From NCBI RefSeq assembly GCF_000315625.1, contig NW_005434645.1:155247-215410 (forward strand): a DNA stretch of 60,164 nucleotides. Direction: 5' to 3'. Below, in pieces: positions 6,472-57,300 of the stretch. A program made the translations under genes and the position numbers. Source of the DNA: Guillardia theta CCMP2712. Its lineage: Eukaryota > Protista > Cryptophyta. The first letter of the stretch is position 1. Every line of letters starts with the position of its first letter. The notes beneath the pieces are model-generated. The model worked only from the letters and a program-made list of their open reading frames with translations. It did not search any database and was not told the origin of the DNA.

Positions 6472-6633
6472 GGACGAGGAGCAGAACGAGGACGAGGACG
6501 AGGAGAAGGACGAGGACGAGGAGGAGGACGAGGAGGAGGAGGAGGGAAGTGGGTGCTTGAGCAGATCTGCTGGCAAACTTGACCGAAAGACACCATTGCT
6601 TCCTCTGCTCCTTTCCTGATCGTCGTCCTGGCC

Positions 6634-9077
6634 ATGACCGCGCAATGTTCATCGCTGAAAATCGATCTTCCGCAGCTGGATAGCTTGAGTCCCGTGTATG
6701 ATATCCAGTGCAAACTCATGGAGGATCTCAAGCTGGGTAGCAGCTACAGCGTGAGCGAGGGCGACATGGTTCATCCTGGGCTGATGGACGCTCTTCGTGT
6801 GCGGATGCTGAGCCAGCAGGAAGCATATTTCTTTCAGGGAGAGGAGAGGGAAGGCAAGGAAGCGGTAGGTTCTCAGCGACTGGGAGAGTTGAATCCGCAG
6901 AACGAGAGATCCAGTCTCGAGCTCCTGAAGAAGCTGCTGAGAGGTCTGAAGCTCTCCTGCCTCTCTCCCATTCACTCACTCAGCTGTTTCCTCCCCTTGT
7001 TCAGATCAACACGGACACAATGGTGGTCTGGTTGAAAGCGCATGGAAGGTTGTAGAGAAGGCATGCTCTTCCTTCTGCAGCAAGTCTCAGTGCTCGTCTC
7101 CCATGCAGTCCATGGAAGATGAAGAAACAGCGAAGTACATCGAATGGCTGAGAGAGCACGTGAGTGCGTTATGTTCACATTCAACTCAACTGACAAGTTT
7201 CGCGCTTCTGCAACCTTGCAGGATATCAGTGACTGTGTTGGGTTGGGATACTTCCAACACAAATCGTCGAGCGCAAAGGAAAAGGAGTCGATGGAGCGAG
7301 GAGTCCTGGCGCTCCGAGACATCAGAGCAGGTAGTTTGATGCGACTGAGGCAGCAGTGGAGAAATGTCCATTTTCATGATGTTGAACTTTCAGATGAGGT
7401 TGTCTACAGCATTCCTGTCGATCACTTGCTGTGCGTCGATACAGCACTCAAGTCAGATATCGGTAGGATGATGGTTTGCGTCGGCGGTTCCTTGAAAGCT
7501 CCTGTGCCCAGGGCCAACCTTCTTGGAAATTCGAGCAAAGATGAAAGAGGTGAGGTGTGAAGAAGATCGGAAGAAGAATTGACTCGTGCTGTTGGCAGAG
7601 GTGGCTGGAGAGGAAGGAAAAGAAAGCTACACAGCAAGCTGAACAGAAGGCGGGACAGGAAGAGGGGGATCAAGAGGAGGGGGAGGAGGAGGAGGAGGAG
7701 GAGGAGGAGGAGGAGGAGGAGGAGGACGAGCTTCATGATGATACTATTTCGATGCTGTTCCTTATCCATGAGATGAAGACCAAACGAGAGACATCCAGGT
7801 GGAAAACTTATTTCGACTTCCTCCCAGGCAAGTTTGAGACGGGAATCTGCTTCGAGGAGGAGGAAGGCGGTGGGCTGAACCTCGACGAGGAGCTGGCAGG
7901 AACTGGTTTCGTGCAGAAACGATGGAAGGAACGAGAGGTGGTAGAGCATACCTACAACATGCTTTTCCCTTGGTTAACAGAGGAATTTCCGCAAGTGTTC
8001 GATCGGGAGCACTTCGACTTCCAGTCCTTCATGTGGGCCAGAGGCGTTTTCGACACTCGTTGCGTCACGGTCAAGTTTCCTGCAGAGAAGACGGGCAAGG
8101 TCGGTGTCGACAACAACGGTGAAGGCGAGAAGGGCACGCGTGACGTGACATGCCTCGTCCCTTGGGCTGACATGTGCAATCACCACCCGTATGCTCAGCT
8201 CAACAAACCAAGTCTTGACCCTACAAGGAAGTTCCTTCAATTCTGCACGATGGCGCCGATCAAACAGGTAAAGGATCCTTCCCGATTTCTTCCCTGCTCC
8301 TCCCGCTGAGCTGCCTCCTCCTCCTCCTCCTCCTCCCCCTCCTCCTCCTCCTCCTCCTCCCTCCTCCTCCTCAATTCCCTTCCTTTCTCTCGCCCTCTCC
8401 CTCTCTTCTCTCCTCATCCCCTTCCTGCAGGGCAGCCAGGTCTTCCTCAACTATGGCCCTCTCGACAACACCCAGCTTCTCCTCTACTACGGGTACGCGG
8501 AGCAAGACAATCCTTACCAGACGTACGCGATAGAGCTCGAGCTCCCGGACGATGAACTTCGCCTCATGAAGCAGCTCATGCTAGTTCACTACCGATTTCA
8601 CGACAGCCATCATCTGCGGGACCGGGGAGAGATCCCAGCTGCCCTCCTCGCCGCCCTCCGCATCTGCCTCATGGACAAGGAGGACATGGATAGGGGGGCG
8701 AGGGAGGGAGAGGCTAACCCGCTCGAAGGACGGATATCGAAGAGGAATGAGGAGGACGTACTGCGAACTCTGGAAGATACAGTGAGCTACGTTCTTGGTA
8801 CGCTCCCTGAGGAGGAGGAGGAGGAGTTAAGGGGAGGAGAAGCAGCAGCAGCAGCAGCTCGCTTTTCTTGCAAGGAATCATCGCGTACAGGCAAGGGCTG
8901 AAGAAAATCCTGCTGTACAACCAAGAGAAGATTAAGAGTTTGCGCGCTGCGTGTGAGGAGGAGGAGGATGAGGAGGGAGGAGAGGAGGGAGGAGAGGAGG
9001 GCGGAGGAGACGCAGAAGCAATGGGGGGAGGAGAGGAGGGGGGAGGGCCAGCTTCGAAGAAGATGAGGAAAGAGTGA
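6634..9077 (+). CDS. SET-domain protein-lysine methyltransferase, Rubisco-LSMT/SETD3/SETD6-like (multi-exon)
   Basis: RGVLALRDIRAG, SRWKTYFDFLP, FMWARGVFDTR, LVPWADMCNH, QVFLNYGPLDNTQLLLYYGY motifs, then an LSMT substrate-binding-like region (IPAALLAALR..ISKRNEE..AYRQGLKKIL). A putative intron at ~8782-8830 restores the frame to TGA 9077. Confidence 0.9.
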
Positions 9078-46162: not shown

Positions 46163-46352
<190 letters not shown>

Positions 46353-46367
46353 CTCCGGGAGCAACAC

Positions 46368-47730
46368 CTTGATCAAAGCATGGTCGAAAGCATTTTTTCG
46401 AACCGAATCCTCAAAATCTTCTTCTTCGAGGATCTTCGACTGCGTCAAATACACAAAAAAATCGCTGACCGCTTCTCCTCTCCCTGTCTTTCCCCCTCAA
46501 ATTTTCCCTCCTACTCTCCCTCTCGTTCTCCCCCTTCATCTGCCCTTCTCTTTCCCCCATCTCCCTCTCCATATCCTTCTCCCTCCTCACTCACCATGTT
46601 CATCGACATCAAGATGGAAAATTTCTCAACGCTGAAATACTCTTGCGCAACACCTTCACCTGCTTGAGCGGAAACATCTTCGACCCTCTCCTCCTCCTAT
46701 TTCACACTGTCAACAGATTCATCCATCTTCCCCACCATCTGCCGCTCGTTCCCTCCTCGTTGGTCTCCTCAGTTTTGCTACCCTTTGCTCATTTCTTCTC
46801 CTCTCTCCTCTCCTCTCCTCCCGGCTCCTCTCCTCTCCTCTTAACTCCTCTCCACTACACTTAATCACTAACACTCTAACCTCTCGGCTCTCCCCGTCTC
46901 CTCCCCTCCCCTCTCCTCTCCTCCTCCTCTCCTCTCTCTCTCTCCTCTCCTCTCCCTCCTCTCCTCTCCTCTCTTCTCTCCTCTCCTCCCGTCTCCTCTC
47001 CTCTCCTCTCCTCTCCTCTCCTCTCCTCTCCTCTCCTCTCCTCTCCTCTCCTCCTACCCTGAACGGAAGGGGCTCATATGACAACGGTTGCTGCAGCATG
47101 GATCGCTTCCATGGAACCCGCTGTGAAATGTTAGAGGAGAGAGGAGAGAAGGGAGAGGTGGGAGAGCAGGAGAACAAGTGGCTTCAGCATGAGGCACGGA
47201 CCTCTCGGAGCTTCGGGATCGTAGCTGCTGTCTGGTTGGCAAACACCTCCTTGGAGATCTTCTTCTCGATCCCCGTTGTCAACATCACACGCATCGCCCT
47301 GTCCTGCGCCGCCTGCTCCCTCCCCGCGAAGCTGCGGGGGCGACCGTAACCCAGCGGTTGCTGGTGAGTCTCGAACTTCTCCCTCATCTCTTGACGACGG
47401 TCGTCGGTGAGCTTCGCGTCCAACGTCGAGATCTTGATGTCGCTGAGCCTGCAGATCTCCGTCAACCCACCGCACAGCAGCAAGCGCACAGCAGCAGGGG
47501 CCTGCTCCCATGCCTGCCCTCGAGCTCTTTGACCATGGTTTGATCGCTGATGTGGTGGCGTTGTGGATAACTGGAGGAGTACAGTCCCATCAGCTGCCTC
47601 TCCACATCTTCACCGCTCTCCTACTCTCATCTTCTGCTTCAAAGTTCGCTCGTAAACGCGATGCTCCTGTTTATCCATGGGCCTTTGAAAGCGCCCATCG
47701 CAAGGATCCTCACCAGCACGCGGATCAGCA
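46368..47730 (-). CDS. Multi-exon hypothetical protein (partial, ends uncertain)
   Basis: Coding-like exons (LSDIKISTLDAKLTDDRRQEMREKF..IPKLRE; RVPWKRSMLQQPLSYEPLPFR; YLTQSKILEEEDFEDSVRKNAFDHALIK) with GT/AG borders. No family recognised. Confidence 0.45.
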
Positions 47731-48216
47731 GGCAGGAGCCATGATGGCCGGACAGCCTTGGCCGCCACGTTGTGCCATGTTGACTCACAATGTGCTTCTT
47801 AAACACGTTCCCGACCTCTCTTCCCCCTGATCCTGTTGGAGGAGGTGAGATGACAGATGTATACAGAGTTTGCCTTTGGTACACCTTCCTAGCTTATCTA
47901 CACTCCTTGCAGCGATCCCCCGCACAACTAATCGTTCTGGCATTCCGAGGGGGGGGGGGCGGCCGTGCCCGGCCCGGTGGGCGGCCGTGCCTCAGGGGCC
48001 AGGATGCAGCCGCCAGAGGCTGCCCCGGCCCGCGAGGCGCCTCGGCTCAGCCGGGCTCGGACCGACTGACCGTGACTCACTGTCAAGCAAGGCCTTGCTA
48101 CATACTCGGAAGCCTTTTATGTACGTCTCTGACGCTTCTGCTTATGAGTACCTGAGCCTATTCCTACGGATACTTTGAGCTTCAAGTACTGGACAGTGAA
48201 AGCCACTCAGCGCCCA

Positions 48217-51200
48217 TCACAAGCTTCCCCACACGAGCACTGTGGTGTCGTCTGATCCTGATACAAGCATGCTGCCGTCCTCCGACCATGCGACATCAGT
48301 CACGCTCTTGGTATGTCCTCGAAAGCACTTGATCTCCTTCCCGCTCCTCGCCTCCCACACCCTCACCGTGCAGTCGGATGATCCTGAGGCGAGAAAGCTC
48401 CCGTCCCTTGTCCATGCAAGGCAGGTGACGCTTCCTTCATGTCCCGTGCAGCAGCTCACTCTCCTGCCGCTGCTCATCTCCCACACCCTCACAGTCTTGT
48501 CCTCTGACCTCGACGCGAGCATGCTCCCGTCTCTCGACCATGCCACACCAGTGACTTGGTCCTGATGTCCCTTCAGCCACCGCCACTGCTTGCTGCTCCT
48601 CACTTCCCACACCCTCACAGTGAAGTCCGATGAACCTGCAGCTAACAACTTGTCATCCTGAGACCACGTCGCATCTGTGACTATCACGAGATGCTCTTCA
48701 AAGCATCTCAACATCTCGCCGCTGCTCATGTCACATACACTCACTTGCCCTTCAGACGTGTGGGTCGCAAGCATGCTCCCATCGTTTGACCAAGCAATGC
48801 GCGTCAATCTGTGTCCTTGCAAGCATCTGATTTGTTTACAGCTGCTTCTCTCCCACACCCTGACCGAGCTGTCCCATGACAAGGCAGCGATCAACTTGCC
48901 ATCCTTCGACCACGCAACCTTTCTGACAACAGATACGTTTCCCTCAAAGTGTCCTATCTCCTTCCCGCCAGGTTCTTCCCATGCTCTGACCGTGAAGTCG
49001 GATGCTCCTGCAGCTATCATCATGCCCCCTTCTTCAGACCACATAACGCTTATGATACTGTTTTCATCTTCTTCCGTGCACCACACCTCGTTGCCGCTGC
49101 TTGCCTCCCATGCTCTGACCGTACCGTCCGATGACCCCGCGACCATCCAGTCTTGGTAGCGCCCGCTCACATTCGTCAAGGCGAGGCACGTGATGCTGCT
49201 GCCTTGTCCCTTGAAGCACCATACCTGCTGGCCGCTGCTTGGCTCCCATGCTCTGACCGTACCGTCCGATGACCCCGCGACTATGCGGTATTGGAAGCTC
49301 TCGCTCACGTTCAAGCTAGTCAAGGCGAGACACGTGATGCTTCTGCCTTGTCCCTTGAAGCACCATACCTCGTTGCCGCTGCTTGCCTCCCATGCTCTGA
49401 CCGTACCGTCCGATGACCCCGCGACTATGCGGTATTGGTAGCGCCCGCTCACATACAAGCTAGTCAAGGCGAGACACGTGATGCTTCTGCCTTGTCCCTT
49501 GAAGCACCGTACCTCGTTGCCGCTGCTTGCCTCCCATGCTCTGACTGTACCGTCCGATGACCCCGCGACTATCCAGTCTTGGTAGCTCCCGCTCACGTTC
49601 AAGCTGATCGAGGCAAGGCACGTGATGCTGCTGCCTTGTCCCTTGAAGCACCATACCTGCTGGCCGCTGCTTGGCTCCCATGCTCTGACCGTACCGTCCG
49701 ATGACCCCGCGACTATCCAGTCTTGGTTGCTCCCGCTCACGTTCAAGCTAGTCAAGGCGAGGCACGTGATGCTGCTGCCTTGTCCCTTGAAGCACCATAC
49801 CTCGTTGCCGCTGCTTGCCTCACATGCTCTGACCGTACCGTCCGATGACCCCGCGACTATGCAGTATTGGTTGCTCCCGCTCACGTTCAAGCTAGTCAAG
49901 GCGAGGCACGTGATGCTGCTGCCTTGTCCCTTGAAGCACCATACCTCGTTGCCGCTGCTTGCCTCACATGCTCTGACCGTACCGTCCGATGACCCCGCGA
50001 ATATGCAGTATTGGTAGCGCCCGCTCACGTTCAAGCTGATCGAGGAGAGGCACGTGATGCTGCTGCCTTGTCCCTTGAAGCACCATACCTGCTGGCCGCT
50101 GCTTGCCTCCCATGCTCTGACCGTACCGTCCGATGACCCCGCGACTATGCAGTATTGGTAGCTCCCGCTCACGTTCAAGCTGATCGAGGCAAGCAACGTG
50201 ATGCTTCTGCCTTGTCCCTTGAAGCACCGTACCTCGTTGCCGCTGCTTGGCTCCCATGTTCTCAACGCGGCATCATCTGTCAGTGCTGCAATCACTTCCA
50301 GTTTCGGAGAGACCATTACGTTCTTGATCTTGCTTGTATGATCTGTAAAACATCTGATCTCTCCCCATGTCGTATACACACTCGCATCCTCCCTTGCAAA
50401 TGGTGAGCTGGTTAGGACCGGATTGACCCTTGAATGCAAATGTCTGTTGATTGATGTTTCAACTCTTGCTTGGTCTACTTTCACTGTCAGCACATCTTCA
50501 CTATCTGACAAACACTCACCTGCTGATGTGCGGGGGGGTAAAGGGGGCAACATCTGGTTGCGGTCTACGAGCAAACTGATGGCTACAGCAGCAGCAGTCG
50601 GCCTAGTCAACTCATCGTAGTCTAGACAGCATAGGGAGAGCTGCTTCCACACTTGATCGCCTGGCAACCCTTTCAACACTTCAGCTTGCTCCTCTCTGCT
50701 TGCTGGCGGCTTCTCTCTGGTCATCACATACATCATGACAAGACCGAGGGAGTACACATCCGACGCAAAGCTCGCAGTCCCTCCCGTCCTTTGCTTTGGG
50801 GACATCCAGCACAAGTCTCCTTGCTTCACCGACCCTGTCGCCCTCGCGATCAGCTGCCTTGTCTTGTGGAGCTCAAACCCCACGAGCTTCGCCATGTCGT
50901 CAGCCTCAACCATCACATTTTTCGGCTGCAAGTCTCCGTGTACCATGCCGAGCAAATGCAGGTACGCAAGCCCGTTCGCCAGCCCTTGGATCACCGCACG
51001 CCCTCGAGCCTCTTGCTCGCTCGCATCGGCAGGTTTGAGAATCAGGTCCACGAAGCGATCGAGGGGCTGCTGCTGCATCTCCGTCAACAGCAGGTACCAA
51101 GGGTCTCCATGCTCGTCCGACAGGATGGCGCCGACAAGGCGAACGACGTTGAGGTGAGACATGCTGAACAGAAGCTTCGTCTCTCGCAAGAACTCCTTGC

Positions 51201-51915
51201 GCATCGATACATCGCCGTCAAACACTTGCGGGTCGTGTGGCTCCAGCACCGCTACCTCAGCTCCCTCATACCTCGCATGGTATACCACTGCGAAGCCTCC
51301 CGTGCCGAGGATCCGCTTCGGCTTCCCTCGACCAGATGTCTCCACCTGAAGCTTCGAAGGGTCGAGCGCCCATGCTTGCTCCTCTGCCTGACTTACATCT
51401 CCATCTACAGCTGCTTTCATCTTGCTGTAAGTGGGATTGTTTCCAAACATGAGCTTTTCTACCTCCTCTCCCTCCTCCCCAGCAACATACCCAGCAAGAG
51501 CACGCATGAGCCTTTGCACTACTGAGAAAACTTCCGACCTCTTGCCTGCTAGCTCAGCCTCAAGCTTGCTCGTGCTTCCAAGCAAACGATCTAAGGGAAG
51601 AGGCTCGCCCGAACGGGTCTTGCCTTTCTTCTGGATGAACACACGCAGGGCGGATAGGATGCAGCAAAGCTCATTGATGGCAACATCAACGAGGCCCTTG
51701 ACCTCCTTGTCGAGTTGTTGGTACTCTTGACGGAGCAGAGGGTCAACAATCTCCTTCACTTCGATCGCAAGATCGCGGAGCTCCTTCTGGTTGTTGGACA
51801 CCACGTGCGCCTCTTGCCACAGGCTGACCAGGTTTGATCGTATCAATACAAGAACATCTGACATGTCGGATAACCTGGGAAAAGATATCAGATATCGATC
51901 GAAGGAGCTCAACAT
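48217..51915 (-). CDS. MLKL-like four-helix bundle + pseudokinase + ~16 WD40 repeats (intronless, 1232 aa)
   Basis: N-terminal helical region (aa ~18-140) patterned like MLKL-NTD/HeLo. Kinase fold with GTGGFAVVY, but VAVL for VAxK, HGDLQPKN, and KLVGFELHKT for DFG. Then 1 + 8 near-identical + 7 divergent WD40 repeats (GH..VT.VAWS.DG..LASGS.D.TVRVWE). Confidence 0.85.
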   Translation of the reverse strand: MLSSFDRYLISFPRLSDMSDVLVLIRSNLVSLWQEAHVVSNNQKELRDLAIEVKEIVDPLLRQEYQQLDKEVKGLVDVAINELCCILSALRVFIQKKGKTRSGEPLPLDRLLGSTSKLEAELAGKRSEVFSVVQRLMRALAGYVAGEEGEEVEKLMFGNNPTYSKMKAAVDGDVSQAEEQAWALDPSKLQVETSGRGKPKRILGTGGFAVVYHARYEGAEVAVLEPHDPQVFDGDVSMRKEFLRETKLLFSMSHLNVVRLVGAILSDEHGDPWYLLLTEMQQQPLDRFVDLILKPADASEQEARGRAVIQGLANGLAYLHLLGMVHGDLQPKNVMVEADDMAKLVGFELHKTRQLIARATGSVKQGDLCWMSPKQRTGGTASFASDVYSLGLVMMYVMTREKPPASREEQAEVLKGLPGDQVWKQLSLCCLDYDELTRPTAAAVAISLLVDRNQMLPPLPPRTSAGECLSDSEDVLTVKVDQARVETSINRHLHSRVNPVLTSSPFAREDASVYTTWGEIRCFTDHTSKIKNVMVSPKLEVIAALTDDAALRTWEPSSGNEVRCFKGQGRSITLLASISLNVSGSYQYCIVAGSSDGTVRAWEASSGQQVWCFKGQGSSITCLSSISLNVSGRYQYCIFAGSSDGTVRACEASSGNEVWCFKGQGSSITCLALTSLNVSGSNQYCIVAGSSDGTVRACEASSGNEVWCFKGQGSSITCLALTSLNVSGSNQDWIVAGSSDGTVRAWEPSSGQQVWCFKGQGSSITCLASISLNVSGSYQDWIVAGSSDGTVRAWEASSGNEVRCFKGQGRSITCLALTSLYVSGRYQYRIVAGSSDGTVRAWEASSGNEVWCFKGQGRSITCLALTSLNVSESFQYRIVAGSSDGTVRAWEPSSGQQVWCFKGQGSSITCLALTNVSGRYQDWMVAGSSDGTVRAWEASSGNEVWCTEEDENSIISVMWSEEGGMMIAAGASDFTVRAWEEPGGKEIGHFEGNVSVVRKVAWSKDGKLIAALSWDSSVRVWERSSCKQIRCLQGHRLTRIAWSNDGSMLATHTSEGQVSVCDMSSGEMLRCFEEHLVIVTDATWSQDDKLLAAGSSDFTVRVWEVRSSKQWRWLKGHQDQVTGVAWSRDGSMLASRSEDKTVRVWEMSSGRRVSCCTGHEGSVTCLAWTRDGSFLASGSSDCTVRVWEARSGKEIKCFRGHTKSVTDVAWSEDGSMLVSGSDDTTVLVWGSL
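49080..50258. repeat. Eight ~144-bp (48-aa) high-identity WD40-coding tandem repeats
   Basis: Unit VWCFKGQGSSITCLALTSLNVSGSNQYCIVAGSSDGTVRAWEASSGNE repeats with limited substitutions; the last unit lacks 2 aa. Confidence 0.95.
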
Positions 51916-52142
51916 GAGGTTAACAGGAATGAATGCTCGTCGAATAGCAGATTAAAGGGTTTGCCTCAAATACTATTCACTCCTGAGCAGCTACGTATAC
52001 CTCTCTTCGTGGGAAAATATTCTTTTCAAATCAAGATCAGGAAATGATTTGTCCTACTCTTCTCTCCCCGATCTTATGATCTTTGCTCTCTTCTAGAAAT
52101 ACTACTATACTCTGATGTACATAAATATTCCGGTGAGTCGTA

Positions 52143-52822
52143 TAGTCTTGTAGTCTTGTAGTCTTGTAGTCTTGTAGTCTTGTAGTCTTGTAGTCGTGTA
52201 GTCGTGTAGTCTTGTAGTCGTGTAGTCGTGTAGTCTTGTAGTCTTGTAGTCGTGTAGTCGTGTAGTCGTGTAGTCGTGTAGTCTCCTGGTCATGTAGTCG
52301 TGTAGTCGTGTAGTCGTGTAGTCTTGTAGTCTTGTAGTCTTGTAGTCTTGTAGTCGTGTAGTCTCCTGGTCATGTAGTCGTGTAGTCGTGTAGTCTTGTA
52401 GTCTTGTAGTCGTGTAGTCGTGTAGTCTTGTAGTCTTGTAGTCTTGTAGTCTTGTAGTCGTGTAGTCTCCTGGTCATGTAGTCGTGTAGTCTTGTAGTCT
52501 TGTAGTCGTGTAGTCTTGTAGTCTTGTAGTCTTGTAGTCTCCTGGTCATGTAGTCTTGTAGTCTTGTAGTCTTGTAGTCGTGTAGTCGTGTAGTCTTGTA
52601 GTCTTGTAGTCTCCTGGTCATGTAGACTTGTAGTCGTGTAGTCTCCTGGTCATGTAGTCGTGTAGTCTTGTAGTCTTGTAGTCGTGTAGTCTTGTAGTCG
52701 TGTAGTCTTGTAGTCTTGTAGTCTTGTAGTCTCCTGGTCATGTAGTCTTGTAGTCTTGTAGTCTTGTAGTCTCCTGGTCATGTAGACTTGTAGTCTTGTA
52801 GTCTTGTAGTCTTGTAGTCTTG
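52143..52822. repeat. 8-bp minisatellite (TAGTCTTG/TAGTCGTG with TAGTCTCCTGGTCATG variants)
   Basis: ~680 bp of tandem octamers; the 16-nt variant keeps the 8-bp register. Confidence 0.95.
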
Positions 52823-54302
52823 TATGTTGCGAGGTAGCTTCATGCTTGACCGAGCTCTCCTTCCAAAAGCTGCAGCCGCGGTGATCCACTCCTACTCCAC
52901 CCCTCCAGTATATCCTAAACACCCCCCCCCGCTCCCCCCCCCCCTCCCTTGTATACCAGATCCACCCCTCCGACAGATTGGGCCTATCTCGGTGACTGTG
53001 CCTCATGCCGGTTCAATGCAGCGAGTGCGAGGTGCTGCAGCTGCTGATGCTCCCGCGCCTTCACCTGCTTGTGCGACAGGTGTACATCGAGAGAGGAACG
53101 AGCGACTCGTCGAAATGCGTAAGCCTTGTGCTGTCGCTTCTTGTGCAGCTGACTTGAGCGAGGAGGCGGTGAGCATGTCTTGAATCGACCATTGTTGGGT
53201 TCTTTCCTTGAACTCTGGTTGGGTTAACGAGCATGACTGACTGAATGTACTGACAGTATGTGAGTTACTTGGACGAGCATGAGCAACTTGCCTGTCCCTC
53301 ACTCTCACCCGTTGTCGCATGTACGCACTCGACCTCTCGGCTTCATTCGGTTTCCAGCGGGTAAACATGACGAAGAGGAGGCGGAGAGGAGGTGGGATGG
53401 GGTGGAGGGGGAGGAGAGGAGAGGAGAGGAGAGGAGACACTTACTACATGCTGGTTATCGTTATCGGTATATGCGTGTGGCGGACTCGCGTGGCTGTTGG
53501 GGCTGGTAGTGGGTGAGTGAGAGGGAGGAAGGAAGAGGAGGCGAGGGCTGACTGAAGACTTCGATGCCGCATGGAACAATTGTTGGACTGTGAACCGAGA
53601 AGGCGGTGAGATGAGAAACAATCGCTATTTGGAGCTCTGACGAAAGTTGTTGATATGGGTGTTTCGGATTCTGAATGATTCGTTGAGGAAATGCAGCGGG
53701 TGAGTTGAAACAGTCAGTTACAAGCCAATGAGATGAGACTGACACATGATCTGCTGTTTCGAACTTGTGATCCGGTGGACATGTTTCGAACAGAACGTGA
53801 GTGCTAGAATTAGAGACGTTGATTCATTCATCGCAAAGATGCTGACCCGAACTTTGATTCTTTCATGTCACTTGGGGGAATGCGTTTGGGATCGGGACGA
53901 CAACAGCTGGTGAGAATGCGAGAGGAAGAGGAGCCGATCGTCAAGAGTCTGAAGTGATTGCTCTGGTACTTGCTGTCATGGGATCGCGGGGACTGCGGGG
54001 CGAAAGCGAGTGAGGATTCCACAAGAGAGGGGAGAAGAGACTGACGGATCGACCTTTCTGACATGCGATACCTTGACGGATGGATGCTTCGGATGCCTCG
54101 ACAGGAAGTCAGTTACATGTGCTTGTGGTTGTGATGGGGTTGGGGAAGGGGGGGTGGGAGGGGGGGCACACAGAGTCAGAGAGACACTGGGTGCAGTCGG
54201 GAAGGAGGATGTGGGGATTGAGGAGGATGCTCTGAAACGAAGCCTCACTGACTGATTGTTCCTCATGTATCGCTTGTAATCGCAATGGGTGCTTGTCGAC
54301 AG

Positions 54303-57300
54303 GCGGTATTTGCATCTGTGTGGCTTGATAGGAGGGATGAATGACTCGCGTCTGTTGTATCAAATGGTGATTTCTTACGGATCATTCGGTAACGTCACTT
54401 ACAGCGGGTACATGGCCGATCTTTAACTTGTCCTGCTTCTGACTAGTTTTCTTTGTTTTTTCCTTGTTCTTGACATGACAGTGTTGTGTAAGTTCTATCT
54501 CCAAGGAATCTTCATTTTCAATGACGAAACAAATTGCATACTCGAGAGACTGTCGCTGAGATGTTATCTTTCAGAATGTGAGTCCACACACTTGTCCCGA
54601 TTGCCTTTAGTCCCAGTCCGTGACAAGATGTGTTTCAGTGCCTCAAGATAAGCGGATGGCCCGATTATGATGAGGTGAATCGAGAGCGAAGGTGATGTCT
54701 AAAGCAACTGAACAACATGTGTGTTGTAGGATGGGTGTGAGTTGTGCAAGCAACGACGGGAGATAGAGTCGAAGCAACAAGATTTTTGGGAGAAGGAGAA
54801 GCAGAAGAAGGAGGAGCGAGAGGAGCGAGATCGATTGAAGAACCTAGACAGGTGCTGCACAATACGGCGAGCCGTGCAACTGGCGACTCGTCATTGGAGA
54901 ACAGCTGAGAGCAAAGGCGGGTACACACTGCAGCTGGATGAAGTGACCGCAAGGTTCTGCTGCCAAGAGTTCGAAGTTGGACAGGACGCTCACGACCTTG
55001 TGCTTGCATTGATCGACCACCTGAAAGGCGAGGAGCATGAGGCGTACAGTCATGTGCGCATGGCTTGGCAGCACGTGAGGTCGCAGGAGAACAGACATGT
55101 CGCCATGCAAGCTGAAGTGATGAGATGTGTGAGCGAAGAGAGCGAGGAAAGAGGAGGATCACTGAGCGAAGTCATCAAGAAGCGCGACAATGCCCGGCAG
55201 GAGCTGATAAGAGCATACCATCAGCTCGTAGAGACTCTGACTGAACAACGTCAGGAGACTTTGAAAGTTTTCGCGACAAGTCTCGAGCAGTTCGCCTGTT
55301 CAGCAGGCAATCTGCTGGACTACCTGAGACGAGGCGGATCTGTTGCCTTGCCGGGCCCCGATGAGCCAGAGGACGGGCTTGCAAGTCAGTCGTCGCTCTC
55401 GTCTGAGCATCTCCGAACGCAGGCAGAAGGAGCGACATCCAGAGTTTCTCAGTGGGTTCAGGGTGTTTGTGCAAGGTTGACCGCGGCGAGACAGGAGCGA
55501 GAGGAACAAGCTCAAGTCTACGCTGAGGGACTTCGGCGACTCTCATGCTTGTTGGACGGAAGTGACTCAGATCTCAGTGTCGAGGAAGCAACGAAGCTCG
55601 AGCGCTCACTCCCGGAGGTGCACATGGCGCTGGAGAGCATGTACCTGTCCGAAGAGGAAGTCTGGTCTGACCAGTCGCTGATCCACTCGTTTCCCATGCG
55701 CGACCTCGTGGAAGTGCTGCAGATGTCTTGTGCATGGGGACAGGAGGTGCTGTTCAACTTAGATCAGATGTGCAAGGTTGAAAGCGTCAAGGCCAAGGTG
55801 GTTGAACTCGAGGGCCTGCATGACCCTGAGGAGCTTCTCGAAAGGCGCACGGAGCTCAAGAAGGCAAGAGACGATGCGGAAGACGAGCTGCTGGACCTGC
55901 GGACTCCCCTGGAAAAGCTGCAGAGGAGAAGGCTTTCAACTCAGGAGCTTGAAGAGAAGATTGAGAAGGTGAGAAAGCAGCTGCTACTTGCCGTGAAGGA
56001 GCTAGAGGTTCAAGAAGATCGCCTATGGAGGCTTCTTCACTTCTACCCCGAGTACACGAGGCACCTCAAGGAGGCAGTGGAAGGAGAGAGCGTCGGATTG
56101 CCCGCAAGCTACGAGAAGTTTGACATGTTCGAGGTGGTCGAACGGTTGTCGCAAGCCGGGCACATGGGCAACCGTCACAATGTGTTCCGAGTGAGGCAGG
56201 GGGAGGAGGAGTTTGTGATCAAGGAGTACAGCCTGATGGAGGGGCAGCGAACGCGGAAGCGCTTCATGCTAGAAGCGAGCATTCTGCATCGCCTGGAGCA
56301 CCCTTACCTAGTCAGACTTAGCAGCGCGTTCGTGGAGGAGAGGCACGAGCATGGTGTTATGACCGTGAAGGGGTACCTTAAGATGCCCTTGTACGTCGGT
56401 GGGAGCCTGTGGAGCTGGATGCTGCGAGCGAAGCCGAGCAAGCAGCAGAAGCATCGGGTGCTGGCGCAGATCTTGCAGGGGATGGAGCATCTGCGACAGA
56501 ACCGGATCATCCACTGCGACATCAAGCCAGCAAACATCCTCATGACCAGCAATCACGAGCGAGCAGAGCCCAAGATTGCCGACTTCGACGTCTCGAGGGA
56601 GCAGGAGGACCACACGAGGGACTTGATCGCGACAGTGACGGCTACACAAGTTGTTGGGACGCTCACGTACATGGCACCAGAGCTGGTGGACCCGACCATG
56701 GCCAAGCGGAGAGCGTCACACAAGTCAGACATGTACTCATACGGGTTGGTGGTGGCAGAGTTCCTGACGGAGACAGCGCGACAGGAGGGGACGCGAGACA
56801 TGAGAGGAATGATTGGAGCGCTTGAGGACGAGGCTCGAGACCTCGTGGTCAAGCTGCTCGACGCCGATCCTCGCATGAGACCGTCTGCAGCTGAGGCCCT
56901 CACTCACCCGTATTTCAATCACTCCATGATCCTGGAGCGAGAGCAGGTCGAGAAGCAGCGCAAGGAGTTGCGAGAGCAGCATGACTCGGAGCTGGCAAAG
57001 GTCTTGAGCCAGCAGGAAGAGCTGGCGAGGCAGGAGAGGGAGGTCGACCTACAGAGGCAGCGGGTGCATGAGGAGGAGAAACAGCTGCTGCACCAGCAGA
57101 GGCAGCTGATGGCGCGAGGAGAGCAACTCGAATCTGAGGCCTTGTCAAGAAAGCTGCAGCTGCAGAAGGAAAAGGCTGAGATCACTCAGAAAGAAAACCA
57201 GCTGAGGAGTCAGCAGAAGAAGCTTGTGTCAGAGCTCAAGACTCTCAGTAGACAAGAGGCAGAGCTCGATCTTAAGGCAAAGGACGTCGAAGCTGAGAAA

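Follow-up and report, generated by a model that had tools for sequence, protein, structure and literature searches.

We analysed a 60,164-nt stretch of contig NW_005434645.1 of the cryptophyte alga Guillardia theta CCMP2712 (hereafter the window), which carries on its minus strand a gene for a large protein of MLKL-like layout, with a predicted helical bundle, a probable pseudokinase and a long WD40 region. Eight of the WD40 units form a tandem array of high identity, which is young and homogenised at this single locus only and whose units are mosaics of shared variants. We propose, with belief and doubt in about equal measure, that this array is a recently amplified, recombining sensor propeller in an MLKL-like family, and that the elongated hairpins ('fingers') of its blades provide a variable contact surface.

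A young array of mosaic WD40 units

The gene consists of one uninterrupted open reading frame (ORF; Table 1), and comparison with its paralogs indicates Met18, at position 51864, as the probable true start. Tandem Repeats Finder (TRF) detected a single array at 49078-50262, with a period of 144, 8.3 copies, 91% matches, no indels and a score of 1922; the repeat reaches 49078, into the next blade. Using the invariant GSSDGTVRA anchors to delimit the units, we obtained eight of them, covering aa 554-935. Seven are 144 bp (48 aa) long; the eighth lacks 6 nt, which leaves it at 138 bp (46 aa) without a frameshift, and the reading frame is preserved through the ORF and every unit. The initial annotation of this DNA had described eight near-identical units of 48 aa, longer than the repeats that follow them, and both statements hold, the seven following blades being of 41-43 aa.

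Table 1. Features of the gene, with positions in the window
Feature	Position	Strand	Basis
Whole gene, uninterrupted ORF, 1232 codons	48217-51915	minus	ORF list, translation, paralog alignment
N-terminal helical module (aa 18-190), consisting of four long helices and then two short 'brace' helices; MLKL_N-like in fold and layout	51346-51864	minus	AlphaFold2 model, Foldseek, feature matches
Protein kinase fold of the tyrosine kinase-like (TKL) type, degenerate catalytic motifs, probable pseudokinase	50551-51345	minus	Pfam PF07714/PF00069 at aa 200-432, paralog motif comparison, PDB kinase matches
First WD40 blade, diverged, upstream of the array (aa 505-553)	50257-50403	minus	Model strands 36-60, paralog alignment
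High-identity array, eight units (aa 554-935)	49111-50256	minus	TRF, unit coordinates, codon table
Unit 1	50113-50256	minus	
Unit 2	49969-50112	minus	
Unit 3	49825-49968	minus	
Unit 4	49681-49824	minus	
Unit 5	49537-49680	minus	
Unit 6	49393-49536	minus	
Unit 7	49249-49392	minus	
Unit 8, with 6-nt in-frame deletion	49111-49248	minus	
Distal a-b hairpin ('finger'), unit positions 23-38, unit 1	50143-50190	minus	DSSP of AlphaFold2 model
Finger, units 2-7	each 144 nt lower	minus	
Finger, unit 8	49141-49182	minus	
Seven canonical WD40 blades of 41-43 aa (aa 936-1232)	48220-49110	minus	Pfam WD40, AlphaFold2 model, dN/dS

At the amino-acid level, the units are on average 83% identical to one another (76-96% for single pairs) and 81-96% identical to their consensus over 382 aa. 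Repeats of high internal conservation have been defined by ~85% identity or more over at least 100 aa (PMC4986451); with 91% matches in DNA and 83% mean identity in protein, the array falls at the border of this class, on its inner side. Variation affects 26 of the 144 nucleotide columns; 18 codons show amino-acid changes, and two show purely synonymous ones. Every variant string listed in the initial annotation was found again (ASIS/SSIS/ALTS; SYQYC, RYQYC, SNQYC, SNQDW, SYQDW, RYQYR, SFQYR, RYQDW; EASSGNE/EPSSGQQ/EASSGQQ; GRS/GSS), together with a further one, EPSSGNE, in unit 1. Units 3 and 4 differ at 2 nt only, which points to a very recent adjacent duplication. The QQ variant of units 2, 5 and 8 hints at a higher-order periodicity of three units, which we rejected, as the pairs three units apart (1-4, 2-5, 3-6, 4-7 and 5-8) differ by 13, 8, 9, 9 and 8 nt, compared with 2-18 nt for adjacent units.

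Four-gamete tests corroborated the proposal that the variants reassort independently. With 16 parsimony-informative sites, all four gametes were present for 61 of the 120 site pairs, and the minimum number of recombination events (Rmin) was 4 within 144 nt; when any possible recurrent CpG transition was removed, 23 of 45 pairs were still incompatible (Rmin 3). Because the incompatibilities persist without CpG transitions, the units are mosaics.

The proportion of synonymous differences (pS) among the eight units is 0.072 (Nei-Gojobori), whereas the synonymous divergence (dS) between the window gene and its paralogs C99 and C112 amounts to 0.7-1.3 (0.18-0.29 between the latter two), which places the amplification or homogenisation at the locus long after the gene duplication. 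We found no sign of exchange between loci in the 87-Mb genome, in which the best non-self DNA match to three of the units is 73% (C99; 69% for C112). Incomplete homogenisation of old units was considered as the main source of the variation and rejected: most minority residues of the units occur in no paralog unit at the corresponding position, and no positional correspondence between window units and paralog units was found, which indicates new mutations rather than leftovers.

We also searched sequencing runs for the locus. In a run of 2021 that is labelled as the same species, the two flanks (47800-49114 and 50220-52172) are present with 0 differences, along with exact pieces of 55-82 nt from inside the array that carry unit-specific variant combinations. 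Their depth is 55-68, against 69-75 for the flanks, and pieces shared between units reach about 3x. The runs that cover the locus represent either the same strain (0 flank differences) or short metagenome contigs of low depth; a relative that has diverged slightly is present, also at low depth, in a run from a freshwater metagenome. This relative (X16; about 26 flank differences, 11 synonymous and 15 not) was not used for selection estimates, given its low depth and the paralogs that it may include. Contigs of two runs share only 36 nt with the array (49242-49278) and then continue into other sequence; they are probably made of reads of paralogous genes and do not represent an alternative junction.

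Position of the variable sites and selection on the units

We modelled aa 495-1232 with AlphaFold2 (AF2) from an alignment with two paralogs; the mean predicted local distance difference test (pLDDT) score is 73. The model of the WD region comprises 16 four-stranded blades, those of the array being predicted to build the first of two tandem C-terminal propellers, and its best PDB match is 2ymu (Foldseek E-value 1e-36, TM-score 0.72 on the target). In the canonical blades, strands a and b are of six residues each, around a 5-residue a-b loop. In the long unit, DSSP assigns 11 residues to strand a (19-29), a turn SG (30-31) and 10 residues to strand b (32-41). Both strands are thus longer by about 4-5 residues and form a beta-hairpin finger on the face of the a-b and c-d loops. 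Paralog fingers vary in length. An N-V-S sequon is present at the tip of the finger (unit positions 28-30) in seven of the eight units, with Y-V-S in unit 6; as there is no signal peptide, its glycosylation is not expected and it is only a conserved tip motif.

The finger holds 11 of the 18 amino-acid-variable positions (23-25, 28, 31-33 and 35-38) and the only indel, which is in frame. Variable positions 3, 7 and 8 are in or beside the c-d loop, on the same face as the finger, and the c-d loop itself (positions 3-7) holds two of the 18. In the top-face loops, one codon of nine is variable (position 17, which belongs to the d-a loop); all units have the same b-c turn, SDG. The top platform of HET-E carries its four selected codons, which are distributed over d-a loop and b-c turn (PMC1805685). 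The initial annotation had likened the array to HET-E recognition repeats; on the AF2 propeller, its variable sites do not make up a top-face platform of the HET-E kind, and the variable surface is predicted to lie on the other side of the propeller from the selected sites of HET-E.

Over all unit pairs, the ratio of nonsynonymous to synonymous proportions (pN/pS) is 1.13 (Nei-Gojobori). Against the unit consensus we counted 22 nonsynonymous and 6 synonymous changes, a ratio that rejects the dN/dS (omega) of 0.12-0.27 of the canonical blades, the kinase and the N-terminus in the same gene family (p<=0.002); rejection is marginal for omega values of 0.36-0.44. Within the gene, the raised dN/dS is limited to the array, where constraint is clearly relaxed or opposed. 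Positive selection on the units is not demonstrated, eight of them being too few for site tests. Amino-acid-variable codons represent 11 of 16 at unit positions 23-38 and 7 of 32 elsewhere (Fisher p=0.002, for a segment of the unit chosen post hoc). Old paralog units likewise have their highest entropy at the positions that vary in the array (1.61 vs 0.99 bits, Mann-Whitney p=0.0013), and positions 39-48 (b-c turn and strand c) are invariant in the array and in these old units alike. The post hoc clustering at positions 23-38 and the entropy match argue against pure drift.

The last three canonical blades (48220-48609, aa 1103-1232) are the most conserved part of the protein, with an omega of 0.12 among three paralogs and long identical stretches, which suggests that they may have a conserved role in partner binding or closure.

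The N-terminal half and the gene family

Pfam searches with the gene product identified a kinase of Tyr/Ser-Thr type at aa 200-432 and WD40 repeats from ~aa 500 to the C-terminus, with no match in aa 1-190 and neither NACHT nor NB-ARC among the best 25 of 59 matching families. The AF2 model of aa 18-470, built from an alignment of nine paralogs (pLDDT 81, predicted TM-score 0.83), consists of a kinase fold preceded by four long and two short helices; the short helices, at 132-140 and 144-153, are placed by the model, and by it alone, between bundle and kinase, as a brace. Mouse MLKL (4btf) ranks fourth in the Foldseek search with this model, with 454 alignment columns (gaps included) compared with 284-336 for the other listed matches; in this alignment the domain orientation differs, with a root mean square deviation of 18 Å. 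In a structure re-alignment of the N-terminus plus kinase model, the matches listed were kinase domains and covered the kinase part.

The kinase has VAVLEP for VAIK, HGD (in HGDLQPKN) for HRD and GFE for DFG, and on these motifs it is probably a pseudokinase. Kinases of C99 and C112 have HGD and GFE in common with it and keep the lysine, and farther paralogs have the lysine, HRD or HKD, and DFG, with HRD in C23, C44 and C33; among the paralogs compared, the lysine is lost only in the window gene.

A full-library profile search with the N-terminal domain yielded 19 proteins, one of which is from the cryptophyte Proteomonas sulcata. Ten of these relatives were scanned with Pfam, and in all ten the domain precedes a kinase. 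MLKL_N was matched in two relatives (E=5e-6, at 26.5 bits for a cut-off of 27, and E=5e-4) and RPW8 in one (E=2.5e-5). Protein language-model features place the domain nearest to the MLKL_N and RPW8 clusters, a lead only, as all matches are at 0.75-0.84. Homology of the N-terminal bundle to MLKL is probable but unproven. As a description of the modelled layout, 'MLKL-like' is supported, and the initial annotation was right to speak of an MLKL-like module rather than a NACHT domain: bundle, brace and GFE kinase follow one another as in MLKL, and Pfam shows no NACHT or other nucleotide-binding oligomerization domain (NOD).

The genome encodes about a dozen proteins with the same N-terminal module and kinase. 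C99 and C112 are 69-70% identical to the window gene in the N-terminal half and co-linear with it over the whole WD region. They carry the same long unit type, diverged in sequence and length (43-49 aa; TRF gives only 78% matches in C99), and C112 is short of one 48-aa unit. In C112 (L022, G000:C112:36000-45999, ~6540-6650), a frame break separates kinase and WD region, so that an ORF of 480 aa precedes one of 746 aa read in a different frame; a pseudogene, a small intron or an assembly error could explain it. C44 (L025, 3067-5364) and C51 (L026) have the same bundle, an intact-looking kinase and repeats of armadillo (ARM) type in place of WD40, C33 (L018) has a hydrophobic, transmembrane-type C-terminal tail, and C21 (L019) has no C-terminal module (its kinase shows K to E, and DFR). 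With WD40 or ARM repeats, a hydrophobic tail or nothing at this place, the family thus swaps its C-terminal modules.

On contig C23, a cluster of four MLKL-like kinase-WD40 genes is 44-45% identical to the window gene in the N-terminal module and kinase. Its WD regions contain young duplicated units, with a period of 126 bp, 2.6 copies at 98% (L023, 6376-6701), and with 5.3 copies at 76% (L024, 3612-4282), so that repeat turnover is a family trait. L023 also contains a long stretch of N.

Word-index protein searches with the N-terminus and kinase returned generic kinases only, with <=31% identity among the best-scoring matches and at most 36% among the matches listed, and the array region returned generic WD40 proteins only (<=36% among the matches listed); this absence of close relatives is weak evidence, since the same searches also missed the paralogs of the genome itself. 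Scanning metagenome contigs with the family alignment gave almost only unrelated kinases, L027 (36%) being the sole possible member. The family is most likely cryptophyte-specific.

In the surroundings of the gene, 85 copies of the 8-bp microsatellite TAGTCTTG (52143-52824) fill much of the space to the head-to-head neighbour gene; the word depth of this motif in the 2021 run is ~50x that of the flanks, showing it to be abundant genome-wide. Downstream of the gene are two further microsatellites, (AGGAGC)x31.7, which is perfect, at 46163-46352, and (CTCTC)x50, which is imperfect, at 46803-47053. The divergent neighbour encodes a second kinase domain (56254-56949, plus strand), 26% identical to that of the window gene.

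Readings of the array and comparison with known systems

According to the reading that we propose, one 144-bp WD40 unit would have been recently amplified or homogenised in tandem, by unequal crossing-over or gene conversion within a single locus, and the first propeller would have been rebuilt from it. New point mutations would arise and continued exchange from unit to unit would reassort them, giving eight blades with a common scaffold, still under constraint, and different residue combinations, mostly on the finger and the c-d loop. The propeller would be the ligand-sensing or autoinhibitory module of a single-chain sensor and executioner, with the fingers as its variable recognition surface. 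We infer how the units recombine, a role of the fingers in binding and any function in immunity or cell death; a sensing or autoinhibitory role of the propeller is most likely by analogy, given the MLKL-like front half and other repeat-bearing sensors. One might go further and regard the protein as a NOD-less single-chain innate-immune receptor, in which an MLKL-type membrane-killing bundle is restrained by the pseudokinase and released when a hypervariable propeller binds a pathogen or non-self ligand through a ring of fingers opposite the classical platform, the cycle of amplification, mutation and reshuffling being convergent with that of fungal NOD-like receptors (NLRs); in this complete form we hold the idea to be improbable.

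Several observations weigh against a sensor propeller with recognition fingers. The 22 nonsynonymous and 6 synonymous changes fit the neutral expectation (p=0.63), and omega is ~1 in every partition by predicted structure, never above 1. The segment 23-38 was picked after the data had been seen, and the a-priori set 'finger plus c-d loop' gives p=0.17. Structural residues are changed as well, with the WD tryptophan replaced by Cys in units 3-4 and changes of Cys to Leu and Val to Phe in strands, which fits relaxed constraint. At the finger tips pLDDT is only 54-63, and the assignment of faces is model-based. The number and order of the units rest on the reference assembly, because in every run the short-read contigs end within the array. 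Regarding the front half, the window protein has no Pfam match to MLKL_N (one paralog reaches E=0.059), and PDB sequence-profile searches with the N-terminal domain gave only coiled-coil noise and no MLKL. With 6% of one run covered, raw RNA reads gave only eight matches; 60-80% of the gene's words occur in several runs that are presumed to be RNA, and transcription of the gene is likely, if weakly documented. The diversifying ligand-binding surface of the initial annotation is still a hypothesis: the variation is non-random and dN/dS is raised, but with a dN/dS of ~1 overall and per partition, the diversifying role is still conjectural.

The same figures lend themselves to a neutral explanation, a rival to be taken seriously and the chief one, which we consider possible though somewhat doubtful: a slippage-prone repeat would have been amplified by unequal crossing-over under relaxed constraint, and then shaped by drift and random exchange, with no recognition role. 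The neutral dN/dS, the altered scaffold residues, the loss of the kinase lysine in the window gene alone, the very weak expression evidence and the partial arrays of similar type scattered without evident pattern among other family members all agree with it. It accounts less well for the uneven distribution of the variation, with an invariant b-c turn and strand c, for the coincidence of the variable positions with those that vary among old paralog units, and for the maintenance of the frame through the ORF and all eight units, in which the only indel is in frame and in the finger. Another possibility, which strikes us as distinctly unlikely, is an ordinary signalling scaffold: the double propeller would serve a (pseudo)kinase pathway as a docking platform, with no connection to immunity or cell death, and the array would result from its recent rebuilding. 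Kinase-WD40 fusions are indeed common and mostly not immune-related, and the N-terminal domain has no significant direct MLKL_N match, but the bundle, brace and GFE pseudokinase layout, the near-threshold MLKL_N and RPW8 matches in relatives, the swapping of C-terminal repeat modules as in immune receptor families and the restriction of raised dN/dS to the array all speak against it. As for an assembly artefact, the breaks of short-read contigs inside the array and the 2011 run, which has no contigs over 49417-50004, might suggest that the array is collapsed, over-expanded or chimeric; this is very improbable in view of the independent 2021 run, with its exact flanks and exact unit-specific pieces at ~1x flank depth, and of the perfect reading frame through all units.

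The closest parallel to a recombining sensor array of this kind is found in the HNWD/NWD proteins of Podospora anserina (het-d, het-e, het-r), which are NACHT-WD40 NLRs with repeats of high internal conservation (PMC1805685, PMC2873952, PMC4986451). Both systems have tandem WD40 units of very high DNA identity (PMC1805685, PMC4986451), differences that fall mainly on certain codons, a reshuffling of variants from unit to unit and unit numbers that vary between paralogs, and in the fungus the repeat domain is the presumed specificity or sensor domain (PMC1805685, PMC2873952, PMC4986451), as we propose for the alga. They differ in that the fungal proteins have a NACHT NTPase, and the algal one an MLKL-like bundle and a pseudokinase; the fungal units are of 42 aa, whereas those of the alga reach 48 aa and have a lengthened a-b hairpin; and the sites in the d-a loop and b-c turn of the former contrast with variation on the a-b hairpin and c-d loop in the latter. 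The algal array also shows no detected exchange of repeats between loci, no repeat-induced point mutation (RIP) and no demonstrated positive selection, and its host is a cryptophyte alga, not a fungus. The HNWD resemblance put forward in the initial annotation thus extends to a high-identity, recombining WD40 array, but not to the variable face or to inter-locus exchange. True homology to the fungal HET-E/HNWD allorecognition system, for which high-identity WD40 units with reshuffled variants could be invoked (PMC1805685), is barely credible: unit length, variable face and lack of inter-locus exchange all disagree, the best WD40 database matches are at most 36% identical, and membership of the HET-E/NLR family is excluded because the NOD domain is missing.

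With MLKL, the animal necroptosis effector (4btf), and plant proteins of the MLKL/RPW8 type, the window protein has in common the four-helix bundle and the two brace helices that are predicted by its model, and a kinase fold with GFE and a degenerate HRD, and it also has no VAIK lysine. Unlike them, it continues after the pseudokinase with a double WD40 propeller of 740 residues, it has no significant Pfam MLKL_N match, its sister paralogs have intact kinase motifs, and it is not known to have a RIPK3-like activator. 2ymu, described in the PDB as a 'highly repetitive propeller structure', is likewise a tandem propeller of very similar repeats, but it is only 25% identical, nothing in its title suggests a functional link, and a long a-b hairpin is not known from it (the two were not compared at coordinate level). 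Within the genome, the C23 cluster shares the N-terminal module and kinase followed by WD40 repeats with locally duplicated units, but it retains the catalytic Lys, HRD and (mostly) DFG, and has canonical 42-aa units without a finger and no homogenised eight-unit array.

Near-identical repeat arrays are rare in plant and animal proteins (PMC4986451), and arrays that reshuffle in this manner are a hallmark of the rapidly diversifying recognition domains of fungal NLRs; here such an array is found on a different chassis and, according to the model, on a different surface of the propeller. If the neutral explanation is true, the locus is a clean example of recent intragenic repeat amplification. 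If the array does serve recognition, the amplify-and-shuffle route to new specificities would have evolved repeatedly, and MLKL-type executioners could be wired directly to a sensor domain. The locus offers a concrete, testable case for cell-death or immune-like systems in an alga with a secondary plastid.

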